From assembly GCA_054661495.1 (NCBI GenBank), contig BAAFSQ010000060.1:1-32000 (forward strand): a stretch of DNA of 32,000 bases. The letters are read 5' to 3'. Below the pieces are notes generated by a model, which saw only the letters and a list, made by a program, of their open reading frames with translations, was not told the DNA's origin and ran no database searches. Made by a program: the position numbers and the translations under genes. Positions 3,600 to 20,807 of the stretch are shown piece by piece (position 1 is the first letter of the stretch; each line of letters opens with the position of its first letter). This DNA is from Zygophlyctis sp. KS116. Lineage: Eukaryota > Fungi > Chytridiomycota.

Positions 3600-5145
3600 T
3601 TAATCATCATCCGAAACAATATTTGATGTCTGATATGAATTATATGAATGATATGGCAAAATTTGACGTTGAACTTTAACTTCAGTCGAACTCGGTCCAT
3701 CTGCACATGAGTAGAGACTCATTTCAATTAAAACACTTAGTCCCACCCCAACAAGTGAAGATATAAGAGCAATTACAAATGGCTCCCAAGAGTAATCATC
3801 AAACAATACTCTGAATATCCCATTTGCGAATTCACCAGTTGTAACATATCCAAATAAAAAAACAGAAAACAAAGAAAATGCACAGCCCAATAATACAGAT
3901 GAACCAGTGATATAATCTTCAAACTGAGGCACTAATCCTAACAGAACAGGGAGTACTGATGTTATTGTAAGAATATTTGCAATCAAAATGAGTTCAGTGA
4001 TTTCCAATTCAAGGAGTCCAAGCAGCATTAAAGGAATATGCAAAAAAATAGAAATAATTCGGGTTGAAACAAGAGACTCTTTGAATCCAAATGAAGAGCA
4101 TAGTGATATGAATGATCCTGTTAATGAGTGTTGAAAAGAGCTAATTAATCCTTGACTTATGGAAACACCTAAAAGCATTACACAAATCTGAATGCTTTCT
4201 GGAGCGTAACGAAAGATTTCAACAAAACAAACTCTTCGATCAGGAACTAAGCCTTTTGCGAAGCCTAAATAACCAATTGCACCAATGGTAAAAATAATAA
4301 CCAGAGTCAATATTGTACTCACCCATGCGCCCACTCTGAGATCTTGCCTGCTTTTTGCTGCAAATGCTCTTTGCCAAATCCCATCAGTAAAAACAAATAA
4401 AGAATGATAAGAAACCAGCATTACAATAATCGTTGAAACTGCATGATGTGTGACGTTGATTGGTTCTAATGGTTTAGATTGAGACTCTATAGCAAAATAT
4501 GCATATATTGTAATAATTAACAGCATAGCAATACTTAGCATCATCTGAAACTGATTGATTATTATTGAAACGTATAGACCTCCACTTGTTGAGACCAAAA
4601 GAGTACTAAGGCCTATGCACAAAACAGCAAAAACACTGCTGGAATCAAAAAAGTCAAACAACTTTCCTAATGCAGTATACTCAGCTACTAGTCCGATTCC
4701 TAACTTTTAGCCCCTATTAAGTACCTGTTATAAAAATGGTGACAAAGTAAATGTAACATGCAGCGGCCTCTCCAAACCTTGATCCAACAAATTCCGTTAG
4801 AGATTTGACTAGAGGATATTTAGTTTTCATGATATCTGCAAGATAAGCGATCAATAAAATAGGATAAGATGCAGCTAAGGCATAGAAAATGAGAATAATC
4901 AATCCTGAAGAACCATTGTCGGGATCACCGGCCATTTTGGATGGAAGGAAAAGAATCCATGATCCAATAGATGTTGTTAAGAAGGCAAATGCAATGCTCC
5001 ACCATGGCAGTGAGTTTCTGGCAGTCCAGAACCAGTCCACAGAGCCAGATAATCTATTGTATGATTGAAGTCTGGACAGATAAACTCCTAATATTCCAAA
5101 AAGAAAAGCAACAAAGATGCTGATTGCATTTGCAGCTACAGTCAT
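3600..5145 (-). CDS. Sodium:solute symporter family transporter, copy B; intron 4700-4724
   Basis: FWTARNS, GSW.LF.PS, V..RFG, LVAEYTA.G, GGLYVSI, WQRAFAA. The 25-nt GT-AG intron restores the frame. Confidence 0.8.
3697..4050. repeat. Near-identical segment shared by SSS copies B and C (second copy about 5366-5719)
   Basis: Direct comparison shows a colinear match at a constant offset of 1669 nt with only scattered substitutions. Confidence 0.9.
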
Positions 5146-15997: not shown

Positions 15998-18275
15998 ATG
16001 CTGTTATTCATCTATACTGCCTTGAGCTGGATGATTGCGATTCTTTTGTATAGAGGCTCTATAGCTTCTCTGGGATACATTCATTCCGATCATGGAACAG
16101 ATGAAAATGGCTTTAAGCAGCAGAGGAATGCAACAAATTCTATGGATTCGGATGGAATATTTACGTTTTTGCAGATATCCGATTTGCATATTTCTGTATT
16201 TAGGCATTCCGAAGGGATCGATCATTTGAAATCTTTTTTAGCGAATGAATTACCAATGATCTCTCCAGAGAAGGTTATTGTCACTGGAGATTTGACAGAT
16301 GCAAAAAGCCGATTTAAAATGTCGTCTGCTCAGTTTTATCAAGGTATTTAGCTTGTAAATAATTTAGATAGAATGGCATGATTATCATGAAGCTTTGATG
16401 AATGCAGAAATTTTTTCAGTTCCGGACTTTTGGCTCGATCAGAGGGGAAATCACGATTGTTCTGATGTTGCTGAATTTGACCATCCTTCCAATCATTTCA
16501 AATCACTTTCTTCTACCAAGAAGGAAGGCTATGCGATTCATCTAAAGAAAAATTATGGAATTTATTTGTTTCTTGGGGTAGATGGTTGTCCAAAATATGG
16601 AACAAGAAGGTTTTTAGCTTTTTTTATTTTATAGGCCTTTTAATTTTTTTGGGACTTTAGATCAACAAGATCTCAATTTTATGCAAGATTCAATGATTGC
16701 AACTGCTAATCATACATTTGTAATGAGTCATTATCCTTCAGGAACAATGGTTAAGGGGTTGTCATCTACGGGCGCCGATTTCGACTACGTGACCAGAAAT
16801 GTGTCGGTTTGGTTTTCAGGACATTTGCATAATTTAATTGGTGGGCTGGGAGAGACAATGTATCATCGTAAACATAATGGATTTCTTGAATTGGAGTTGG
16901 GGGATATGAAAGTACACAAGATGTATCGGATAATGACAGTGGATAATGATGTGATTTCATTTAGAGACCTTTCTTTATCAGAAAAGAGTTATGAATCTAT
17001 GGATCCAATTGTTTTGATAACTTATCCGAAAGATGGTCGATTTTTAACAAAAAATGAACCAAGGACTTTTCTTTTCAAGAATGCATACATACGATTTTTA
17101 TTATGGGCAGGTGAAAAAAGAGATTTTCAATTTATAATCTCTATTGATGGAGATGTCAAGCCAGATCTTGTTCCGGTGTATGCAGGTGTGGGACATCCCT
17201 GGAAGAATAAAACAGTTGTGAGTGGAGAAGAATATGTTCCTCTTTGGACAATAAAGTGGGACCCTACTGAGTACAATGACGGACTGACACACACGATGAC
17301 TATTAAAGTAGATGGTAGTGCAAATTCAGAGTTTTCTCATTCAGCTTCTCATTCTATCAGTTTTAGATACGATGGTGATCTCATTGATGATCTAGATTCC
17401 GGATCGGGTGGTTTTATAGTTTCGATTGATTTTAATCTGTTGTTTAAGTCACTTTTTTTAACAGGATATATTTTACTATTTTTTGGACTATTGGTTGTGC
17501 CAAAATTGTGGGTAACTTATCTCAAGCAAAGGCGTTCTTATAGACCTTGGAAAACAACGATTTCAAAATGGATCTTAAAATCAGAGATGACAAATAAGTC
17601 GTCCTTGTATGGATTGATCCAAAGATTCACTTCCAGATGGATTTTAAGATTATGCCACATGGCCTCTGATCAATTAACTCTTTGGACTTCATATTTTATC
17701 TACGCCAATTGCATAATCTCCCTCCCGTGGTTTTTTGGAGATTTCGTTCCTTCGAGCGAGGATTCATCCAGGAGATGGGGGTTTTCATTTCTGTATGGAA
17801 TTTTGTTCTTGGACGGCACATGGATTCCTTTGCTAGATTCTTGGGCTTACTGTAAATATATTTTGCTCAACATATAGCGACATTTACTCTTTTTGGCACA
17901 ATCATCCCCTTTTACCTCTACTTTTCTTGCTGGTACGAGCCTTTAGAACTTTCATCTGACAATATTTCAAGAGTCCGTCCAATTCATCGGAGATGGTATA
18001 TATCATTTTTAATAGCTTATCTGTGGCTTTATTCTGCATTAGATATATTCTTTATGCTATTTTATTATGGTAAATGGGCAGTTTTGATGAATCAAAGAAC
18101 ATGGTTTTTAGTGTTTATCGCTCTAAATCTTTATCGTGCTTGGAGGAATGCGCAATTTACGTCAGTAGATACCATAGAAGAACACGAAACTCCTCAAGTT
18201 GGGATATCGTTAAGTAGAAAACACGGCACCTCTCCTTCTTCGTACAATCTCAGAAGTCGGACATCATTAAACTAA
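15998..18275 (+). CDS. TMEM62: TMEM62-like calcineurin-type metallophosphoesterase with C-terminal TM helices; introns 16344-16371, 16610-16634, 17852-17877
   Basis: QISDLHIS, TGDLTDAK, spliced QEW, RGNHD, spliced RPFNFFG, HYP, GHLH, LELELGD. Confidence 0.82.
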
Positions 18276-19455: not shown

Positions 19456-19811
19456 CTACCTCATACGTACACAGTTACAAGTGCTTAAGCATTCGCAACC
19501 CATTCCCTTTGGTCAGTGACTACAATCTTACTGTTCCTCTACAAGAGCAAAGAGGAGAATGTGATTTAGCACCCTTGGCTTTCCCAAGAATCTATAATTA
19601 CATATTATAAATTTACTTTATCTTCTAATTCTGTCCAATCGGTACTCAATGTCCGAGATCGGACAATACTATTTGTAGAAAATGAATTTCTACGATGGCA
19701 TTCAAAGCATTTACAAGAGCTACGATCACACAAACATGCAGTTTTACAAATGCATTCTAGAGTATCCATTTTAGGCTGACAGATTTTACAAAAAGTATCG
19801 AGATTCTCCAT
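19456..19811 (-). CDS. Small Cys-rich metallothionein-like protein, about 101 aa; introns 19592-19616 and 19507-19531
   Basis: Two 25-nt phase-0 GT-AG introns (the second with a CTGAC branch motif) extend the 68-aa ORF with ILGKAKGAKSHSPLCSCRGT and GMGCECLSTCNCVRMR*. It has 15 Cys, mostly CxC. Confidence 0.6.
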
Positions 19812-19884: not shown

Positions 19885-20807
19885 ATGTTATTTCAGGTAA
19901 TCATTGTTCTGGTAATGTTTAGACTCTATTGATTGTAACTGGTTGTAGCGCAAGTGTTTTTCATCAGACTGATCTTCCTTCCCAACTCAAGAATGCGTTG
20001 GATCCAATCTTTACGAAAAAGGCTGATAAAATTAAGCCGCTATGTGTAATAGATCATTGTGGAAATTTGTTAGGGAAATGTCTCTTAAGTGAAGGATGTA
20101 GATTGACGCTTAATTGTTTTAAGAAATGTACTGCAGAAGATGTGCAATGTAATAATGATTGCTTTTTTGGATACTCTAATCCAATATTTAATCAACTTAC
20201 AGATTGTTTAATCTCTAATAGTTGTTTACCAGGACTTGTATTATCCTCAGATTCATGTCCTAATAATGGAAATATTGATAATCCAAAAAAAGGTTGGGAA
20301 AATAAATTATTACTAGGACCAAGTAATAAAGGAAAAGTATATATAGCTCGTGGATGGAATCCAACTTATGATTGTGTACCGTGTCAAAAAGCTACTTATA
20401 CTGGAATTTATGATCCAAATGATGAAAAGATTCAATTATATACTGAATGGACAACTGAAAATGAGGTTGGGCAAGTTAGATCAGCAAATTATACTCTAGT
20501 TCAGACGGGATCTAATACAATGTTGACGAAATATAGTCTTTTTGGAATGAATGTAGAAGAAAATTATTATATGCTGGATTGGACAAATGATGGGAAATGG
20601 GTCATGTTTTACTATTGTGGCTATGGATTTGGTTCAGAATATCAGGGGGCTCTATTACTTACCACAGAACGCGAGTTTGATACACTTCCAAGGGAGATTG
20701 AATCTAGATTTAACCGGGCAATAGTTTCAGCTGGTCTATCAGATTATTTAGATCCAATGTCTGATTGGTGTAAGCCTCTGTATAATACACAGTGCAAGTC
20801 TTTTTAA
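19885..20807 (+). CDS. Violaxanthin de-epoxidase-like (VDE/VDL/VDR family) protein with signal peptide, about 298 aa; intron 19897-19922
   Basis: Cys-rich domain C...C......C.....C.....C...C......C...C..............C.....CL followed by lipocalin motifs GKVYIARGWNPTYDCVPCQ, EENYYMLD, FYYCG......YQGALLLT. Confidence 0.8.

Follow-up and report, generated by a model that had tools for sequence, protein, structure and literature searches.

A predicted secreted protein of the violaxanthin de-epoxidase family encoded in a chytrid-like fungal genome

The literature assigns violaxanthin de-epoxidase (VDE) and its relatives VDL and VDR to photosynthetic eukaryotes (PMC13181403), yet a VDE-like gene is present in the genome of a fungus that does not photosynthesise. 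How did such a gene come to be there, and what could its product do? The locus lies in a stretch of 32,000 nucleotides, here called the window. An earlier note on this DNA had proposed that the gene is an integrated host gene with a native 26-nt intron, that it encodes a secreted rather than plastid-targeted member of a family known from plants and algae, where its members are plastid proteins, and that it was acquired horizontally from algae or is an ancient relic, repurposed as an extracellular enzyme or binder of carotenoids or epoxy-lipids.

Gene structure and genomic setting

The VDE-like gene consists of two exons on the forward strand (window 19885-20807), with an ATG at 19885 and a TAA at 20805-20807, and encodes a precursor of 298 aa (roughly 31 kDa):

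19885..19896, + strand, exon 1: 4 codons (ATG plus three; M-L-F-Q), the start of the signal peptide, read directly
19897..19922, + strand, predicted spliceosomal intron: 26 nt, phase 0, GTAATC...TTTAG (GTA..TAG)
19923..20807, + strand, exon 2: 882 nt or 294 codons (19923-20804) plus TAA, covering the rest of the signal peptide, the N-domain and the barrel

Because the frame of exon 2 lacks a Met until residue 199, the upstream ATG and the 26-nt intron are required. The same layout was found in an orthologue that is 69% identical at the protein level and lies on an independent metagenomic (Logan) contig, L001. There, an ATG at 4493 opens a four-codon exon 1, followed by a 25-nt GTAAG...TATAG intron (4505-4529) and a long exon, and both the position and the phase of the intron (phase 0, after codon 4) are kept. 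RNA runs were searched for the locus with regard to splicing and expression, and none of them contained it. A ciliate-type genome or an alternative genetic code, suspected from the 26-nt GTA..TAG intron, was rejected given the TAA end, the lack of in-frame TAA or TAG codons and the fungal neighbours. All searches and models used exon 2 alone (window 19923-20804; 294 of the 298 residues), and residue numbers refer to exon 2; the exons of the paralogues described below were likewise analysed separately and unjoined. Head-to-head with the gene, ~75 bp from its start codon, lies a 68-aa Cys-rich ORF (13 Cys; window 19605-19811, - strand) with no match in Pfam, which may encode a small metal-binding or secreted peptide or may be a chance ORF.

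The surrounding genes were identified as follows:

16681..17877, + strand, TMEM62-like gene, upstream; syntenic with L001
21138..21578, + strand, CFAP96-like (cilia/flagella) gene, largest exon, downstream; Pfam PF15239, E 1.3e-39; also in L001
21935..23014, - strand, galactose-1-phosphate uridylyltransferase (GalT) gene, by Pfam

The best named matches of GalT were from Spizellomycetales and other chytrids (55-58% identity), and a quick single-gene tree placed it beside Rhizophydiales with weak support (84). Gene order on L001 is the same as in the window (TMEM62-like, VDE-like, CFAP96, GalT, TAFII55), with 69-81% protein identity between the shared genes. Synteny, the conserved intron and the fungal neighbours together imply that the gene resides in a flagellated chytrid-like fungus, whose assembly is an incomplete MAG (12.7 Mb in 1175 contigs) and whose DNA was found again in the freshwater metagenomes of 15 studies. 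An artefact, be it the mis-binning of an algal contig into the fungal MAG or the assembly of a chimera, might be suspected from the fragmented assembly and from the algae that the source metagenomes also contain, but it is extremely improbable given that the gene is located 19 kb or more into a contig whose length is at least 32 kb, that GC is even across the window (33-37%), that a chytrid-grouping GalT and CFAP96 flank the gene, that its order among these neighbours recurs on a contig from another sample, and that the algal homologues share just ~30% identity with it and have Ala-rich sequences, which points to GC-rich genes.

Comparison with the L001 orthologue gave an omega of ~0.19 at a dS of 1.1, which is near saturation, and short metagenome contigs mapped to the locus revealed 7 synonymous and 3 nonsynonymous SNPs in near-identical strains from other lakes. 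By these sequence comparisons, the gene is under purifying selection.

Family, fold and active-site positions

Exon 2 matched the Pfam VDE family (PF07137) over profile positions 3-231 of 242 with an E-value of 6.8e-27 and 94.9 bits (cut-off 25.7), and both the GKVYIARGWNPTYDCVPCQ and the YYCGYGFGSEYQGA motifs are found in the protein. Two domains follow the N-terminus:

20043..20258, + strand, helical Cys-rich N-domain: residues 41-112, 11 Cys; helices at 39-98 in the model
20331..20732, + strand, eight-stranded lipocalin barrel plus C-terminal helix: residues ~137-270, by DSSP on the model

The predicted mature protein contains 16 Cys, and the 11 in the N-domain (C41, C46, C53, C59, C65, C69, C76, C80, C95, C101 and C112) show either no variation or at least 90% conservation in alignments of 22 and of 59 relatives. 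An AlphaFold model built from the 59 relatives reached a mean pLDDT of 86 and a pTM of 0.83; DSSP assigned to it 8 strands spanning residues 138-247 and a C-terminal helix at 257-269. When the model was compared with the PDB using Foldseek, the lipocalin domain of Arabidopsis VDE (3CQN) ranked first (E 1.3e-7, TM 0.69 by target), followed by ApoD, crustacyanin, bilin-binding protein and other lipocalins, carriers scoring nearly equal. The best shape matches in the ESM Atlas were two-domain VDE-domain clusters from Chlorophyta and Streptophyta (TM 0.72-0.73 over ~250 residues). By sequence, phmmer aligned the protein to 3CQN with an E-value of 0.027 in a small PDB set.

The N-terminus, of ~19 residues with a hydrophobic core, carries neither a long extension nor plastid targeting. 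The signal peptide of the window copy is short and weakly hydrophobic, and signal-peptide-like hydrophobic N-termini are found in the L001 orthologue and in both paralogues as well. The protein is thus predicted to enter the secretory pathway and to reach either the extracellular space or the acidic lumen of an endomembrane compartment.

Residues were mapped through the alignment to 3CQN, mature Arabidopsis VDE numbering being the 3CQN chain number plus 76 (checked on D114, D117, H121, H124, R138, H168, D177, W179 and Y198):

20370..20372, + strand, Asp150: equivalent of VDE D114 (gate residue), followed by C154 (C118) and Q155 (Q119); invariant in 59 relatives
20559..20561, + strand, Glu213: equivalent of the VDE catalytic acid D177
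20613..20618, + strand, Tyr231-Cys232: equivalent of the VDE catalytic Y198, followed by the R199 position (Cys is a signature of the short forms)

Canonical Arabidopsis VDE (3CQN/3CQR), the best solved fold match, thus shares with the window protein D114, C118, Q119, Y198 and an N-domain with 11 Cys. It differs in having Asp at position 177, in its Glu-rich C-terminal domain, in its transit peptide and in its place in the tree, which is a separate clade. In addition, the pH-switch and dimer residues D117, H121, H124, R138 and H168 are replaced in the window protein by P, A, Y, T and Y, respectively, and the protein ends 4 residues past its last conserved Cys. According to a review (PMC13181403), VDE uses D177 and Y198 in catalysis, and in VDL and VDR Glu takes the place of D177 while both Y198 and W179 are kept. 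Glu at 177 is shared by all aligned members of the 19-row subfamily defined below. C232 is invariant and C291 nearly invariant in the 22- and 59-relative alignments, and the C-terminal Cys (C291) is present in all short forms. N214 and Y215 occupy the D178 and W179 positions. W179 of VDE has been proposed to stack on violaxanthin, and with Tyr in its place in the subfamily the ligand may differ.

A polymorphism affects the residue adjoining the catalytic-type Glu. In lake strains, A is replaced by C at window position 20562, which changes N214 to His. His at 214 is the state in the orthologues and in most subfamily members and was seen in all four metagenomes examined; the Asn of the assembly is the minority state.

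Taken together, the earlier note's description of the gene held up. The 26-nt intron is present at 19897-19922 and, as a prediction at the DNA level, finds its counterpart in the L001 orthologue; integration in place of contamination is borne out by the fungal-type neighbours and the synteny; and the call to the VDE family agrees with the profile match, the 3CQN alignment and the fold search. The features it had read from the sequence, namely the Cys-rich N-domain, the lipocalin motifs, the short signal peptide and the lack of a Glu-rich tail or transit peptide, were all found in place. The modelled two-domain fold with an acid and a Tyr at the 177 and 198 equivalents adds to the family call, and the N-termini of the protein, its orthologue and both paralogues, along with the 16 Cys of the mature part, favour secretory over plastid targeting.

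Subfamily, origin and breadth of the family

A search of 1.84 billion representatives, run exhaustively with HMMER, returned 212 relatives at E<=1e-3, 55 of which were used for an ML tree (LG+C20). The window protein fell into a clade of 19 rows (support 100/98), 8 of which were looked up by name, and this clade comprises three groups:

chytrid-lineage group, support 100/100: WIN (the window protein), P0001, P0002 and P0003
aphelid group, support 98/89: Amoeboaphelidium protococcarum KAI3653994 plus metagenomic sequences
Chlorellales group, support 94/88: two Micractinium proteins (KAL4438955 and KAL4443961) plus unnamed Ala-rich sequences

Members follow the pattern D114/C118/Q119/E177/Y179/Y198/C199 with a C-terminal Cys, a signal peptide and a length of 260-335 aa, which the window protein fits. 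KAI3653994, KAL4438955 and KAL4443961 share with it the clade, the length class, the signal-peptide-like N-terminus and E177/Y179/Y198/C199; they are 28-40% identical to it and annotated only as hypothetical proteins. On this evidence, the short and presumably secreted VDE-like proteins of chytrids, aphelids and Chlorellales are a subfamily separate from canonical VDE, VDL and VDR. Our literature search found no paper describing it, and a profile search of a protein collection with the alignment of relatives returned 8 proteins and no new names. One algal member (P0012; Micractinium tetrahymenae KAL4443961) carries a C-terminal Pro/Ala-rich extension that ends in a hydrophobic tail resembling a GPI-anchor signal. 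This C-terminus suggests that the algal members, too, are cell-surface or secreted proteins and not plastid proteins.

Two further VDE-family genes are present in the same assembly, on contigs C44 and C61:

C44:24575-25542 (L004:1345-2312), + strand: same subfamily, 44-59% identical, clear signal peptide, two large exons
C61:34608-35398 (loci L003/L005), - strand: different subfamily, signal peptide, Glu at the D177 position, at least 2 small introns

The C44 paralogue has metagenomic orthologues of its own (P0008 and P0003), which implies that the duplication is old. Among the nearest relatives of the C61 paralogue are P0151 and P0045, the latter a transcript cluster from Euglena mutabilis.

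Within the 19-row clade, each of the three groups (chytrid, aphelid and algal) is monophyletic and sits on a long stem. The best tree pairs the chytrids with the aphelids at a support of only 78/78; a topology constrained to unite chytrids and algae is 2.9 lnL units worse, and the AU test does not reject it (p-AU 0.35). Any transfer must have been ancient and not recent, since identity to the algal proteins is ~30% and since introns and composition are host-style and there are two old paralogues. Our preferred reading of the origin is an old presence of the gene in the lineage of aphelids plus fungi, combined with an ancient exchange with green algae in either direction.

A different history would be that chytrids and aphelids each acquired the gene directly, by independent horizontal transfer from a green-algal host or prey, and that it did not descend from a shared ancestor within Holomycota. 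Green algae of the Chlorella type serve as food for chytrids and aphelids, and among the 8 of 19 rows looked up for names, the sole members outside Holomycota are Chlorellales, with no named cultured chytrid among them. A tree that joins chytrids and algae is, as stated, compatible with the data. However, chytrids and aphelids group together in the ML tree, the fungal sequences are not nested among the algal ones, and both the low identity to the algal proteins and the host-style character of the genes push any transfer far back in time. We consider separate acquisitions possible, if on balance doubtful. As for the acquisition from algae put forward in the earlier note, green algae (Micractinium) are indeed the nearest named non-fungal relatives, but the direction of exchange does not follow from a weakly supported branching order. 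An ancient transfer from algae is possible.

The other clades of the tree were identified by residue pattern, the labels VDL-type and VDR-type being based on such patterns and a few named taxa instead of reference sequences. A clade containing ochrophytes keeps D177, H121 and R138 and is VDE-type. A clade containing haptophytes (100/99) combines E177 with W179 and is labelled, by inference, VDL-type. VDL is a plastid-lumen protein restricted to chromalveolate algae, whereas the window protein lies outside the VDL-type clade, has a plain signal peptide, is ~130-200 residues shorter, carries Tyr in place of W179 and has the additional Cys pair C232/C291. The ~520-aa proteins of a clade containing Closterium, with E177, would be VDR-type, again an inferred label; they are separated from the 298-aa window protein, which belongs to the opposite half of the tree.

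Members of the family also occur outside photosynthetic eukaryotes. A large clade with D177 and C199 includes lipoprotein-like sequences along with proteins of the vampyrellid Leptophrys vorax and of the chytrid Blyttiomyces sp. JEL0837. Members of this type are also encoded on three contigs (20-98 kb) of bacterial MAGs (L009, L010 and L011; Spirochaetales and two Proteobacteria); these bacterial proteins are short, have lipoprotein-like N-termini and keep D177, W179 and Y198. The Blyttiomyces protein (KAJ3314929), automatically labelled 'violaxanthin de-epoxidase, chloroplastic', is also a short VDE-family protein of a chytrid, but unlike the window protein it belongs to this other subfamily and has Asp at 177 and Trp at 179. 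Another clade is found on large, gene-poor contigs as short intronless genes (L014:6001-6910; L012/L013:6001-6897). The gene on L014 adjoins Death-domain genes, which suggests that this contig stems from an animal genome, and the ESM Atlas contains clusters of VDE-domain proteins of 282-291 aa for which Mollusca or Porifera make up most of the known taxa. Based on the Atlas taxa and the Death-domain neighbours, animals probably carry VDE-family members.

Among heterotrophs, a VDE-like gene has been described in a MAST-4 stramenopile (Roy et al. 2014, PMC3998028), where it was read as green-alga-derived and as possibly acting as a lipocalin. Compared by description only, it resembles the window gene in its non-photosynthetic host, in its position between host genes and in lacking an N-terminal extension, and differs in host lineage. 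A literature search on VDE-family proteins in chytrids, aphelids, fungi, molluscs and sponges returned nothing specific, MAST-4 being the sole heterotroph case found. The earlier note's premise that the family comprises only plant and algal plastid proteins is contradicted by the members in bacterial MAGs, Blyttiomyces and Leptophrys vorax, probably by those in animals, and already by the published MAST-4 gene. With the window gene and its aphelid and Chlorellales relatives added, the VDE family is much wider than photosynthetic eukaryotes.

Possible function

Extracellular action on epoxy-carotenoids, as suggested in the earlier note, is plausible. For this native, maintained chytrid gene, our best reading is a secreted VDE-family protein that would open epoxides of algal xanthophylls or similar lipids without a cofactor, and an old presence in Holomycota; we put the probability of this reading at about 0.45. 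The barrel would bind a long hydrophobic epoxide, most likely a 5,6-epoxy-xanthophyll (violaxanthin, antheraxanthin or neoxanthin) from green-algal cells or other carotenoid-rich material. Buried Glu213 would protonate and open the epoxide, assisted by Tyr231, both positions being taken from the alignment. Green-algal xanthophylls are suggested as substrates by the circumstantial finding that the subfamily occurs in an aphelid that consumes green algae, in a lake chytrid and in Chlorellales.

The reaction would be an isomerisation that, like that of VDL1, needs no cofactor and takes place outside the cell or in an acidic digestive compartment, rather than an ascorbate-dependent de-epoxidation. 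We favour isomerisation over reductive de-epoxidation because the VDL tautomerases likewise have Glu as the acid and because the window protein has neither the His/Arg pH-switch nor a Glu-rich docking tail. VDL1 is the violaxanthin-neoxanthin tautomerase of diatoms and haptophytes; it does not require ascorbate and works best at pH 5-6 (Dautermann et al. 2020, PMC7056318). Like the window protein, VDL1 belongs to PF07137, has the two-domain core with Glu at the D177 position, keeps Y198 and has no strict need for a Glu-rich tail, and its independence from cofactors would be well matched to a compartment that lacks ascorbate.

The main alternative is a secreted lipocalin with no catalytic role that carries or scavenges hydrophobic compounds (sterols, fatty acids, carotenoids or retinoids) from the environment or the host and for which VDE ancestry provides merely the scaffold. 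Lipocalins are often plain carriers, and the near-equal scores of ApoD, crustacyanin and bilin-binding protein in the fold search and the replacement of W179 would be expected of one. Still, D114, Q119, Glu177 and Y198 are kept across chytrid, aphelid and algal members at 30-37% identity, as is typical of a catalytic constellation; the acid, Tyr, Asp and Gln thus persist together in proteins that are only ~30% identical. The Cys-rich N-domain, which is required for VDE activity, is also fully retained. We regard a mere carrier as unlikely.

Genes that bear on carotenoids and retinal were also surveyed in the assembly. Two tandem microbial-rhodopsin genes are located at C71:25549-28121 (- strand; Pfam Bac_rhodopsin, E 2e-19 and 4e-16), with weaker matches on C38 and C43. 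Two SQS_PSY matches were found, which may represent squalene synthase and a complex-I assembly factor. A domain search of the incomplete assembly yielded no lycopene-cyclase and no RPE65 carotenoid-oxygenase domain, which, with rhodopsins present, puts the source of their retinal in question.

Given at least two tandem rhodopsins and a flagellar (CFAP96-like) gene next to the locus, the protein could instead serve the fungus's own isoprenoids, supplying or processing a carotenoid or retinal chromophore for zoospore rhodopsin photoreceptors and not acting on foreign pigments. This is highly unlikely. A secreted, disulfide-rich protein would be odd for an internal biosynthetic step, and fungal carotenoids are not known to be 5,6-epoxides; that no lycopene cyclase or phytoene synthase-type domain and no carotenoid cleavage oxygenase turned up in 12.7 Mb of incomplete assembly counts against it as well, as weak evidence.

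Epoxide opening on algal xanthophylls by the window protein thus remains our preferred reading, and a broader and quite improbable extension of it would see the short secreted VDE-like proteins as a shared digestive or pigment-processing toolkit of algivores (chytrids, aphelids, vampyrellids, MAST-4 and filter-feeding animals) that opens the 5,6-epoxides of dietary xanthophylls outside the plastid. In a chytrid with rhodopsins and no detected carotenoid pathway, the products might then feed the chromophore supply. If this were true, these would be the first enzymes named for carotenoid conversion by algivores.

For the biology of the organisms, the subfamily represents a well-conserved branch of the VDE family that is predicted to work in the secretory pathway of non-photosynthetic relatives of fungi that live with algae. 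If the window protein is a mere carrier, it would still mark cleanly an ancient sharing of genes between green algae and the Holomycota that consume them. If it is an enzyme acting on epoxy-xanthophylls, it would provide a first candidate for the processing of pigments where chytrids or aphelids interact with algae, and a new cofactor-free carotenoid biocatalyst.
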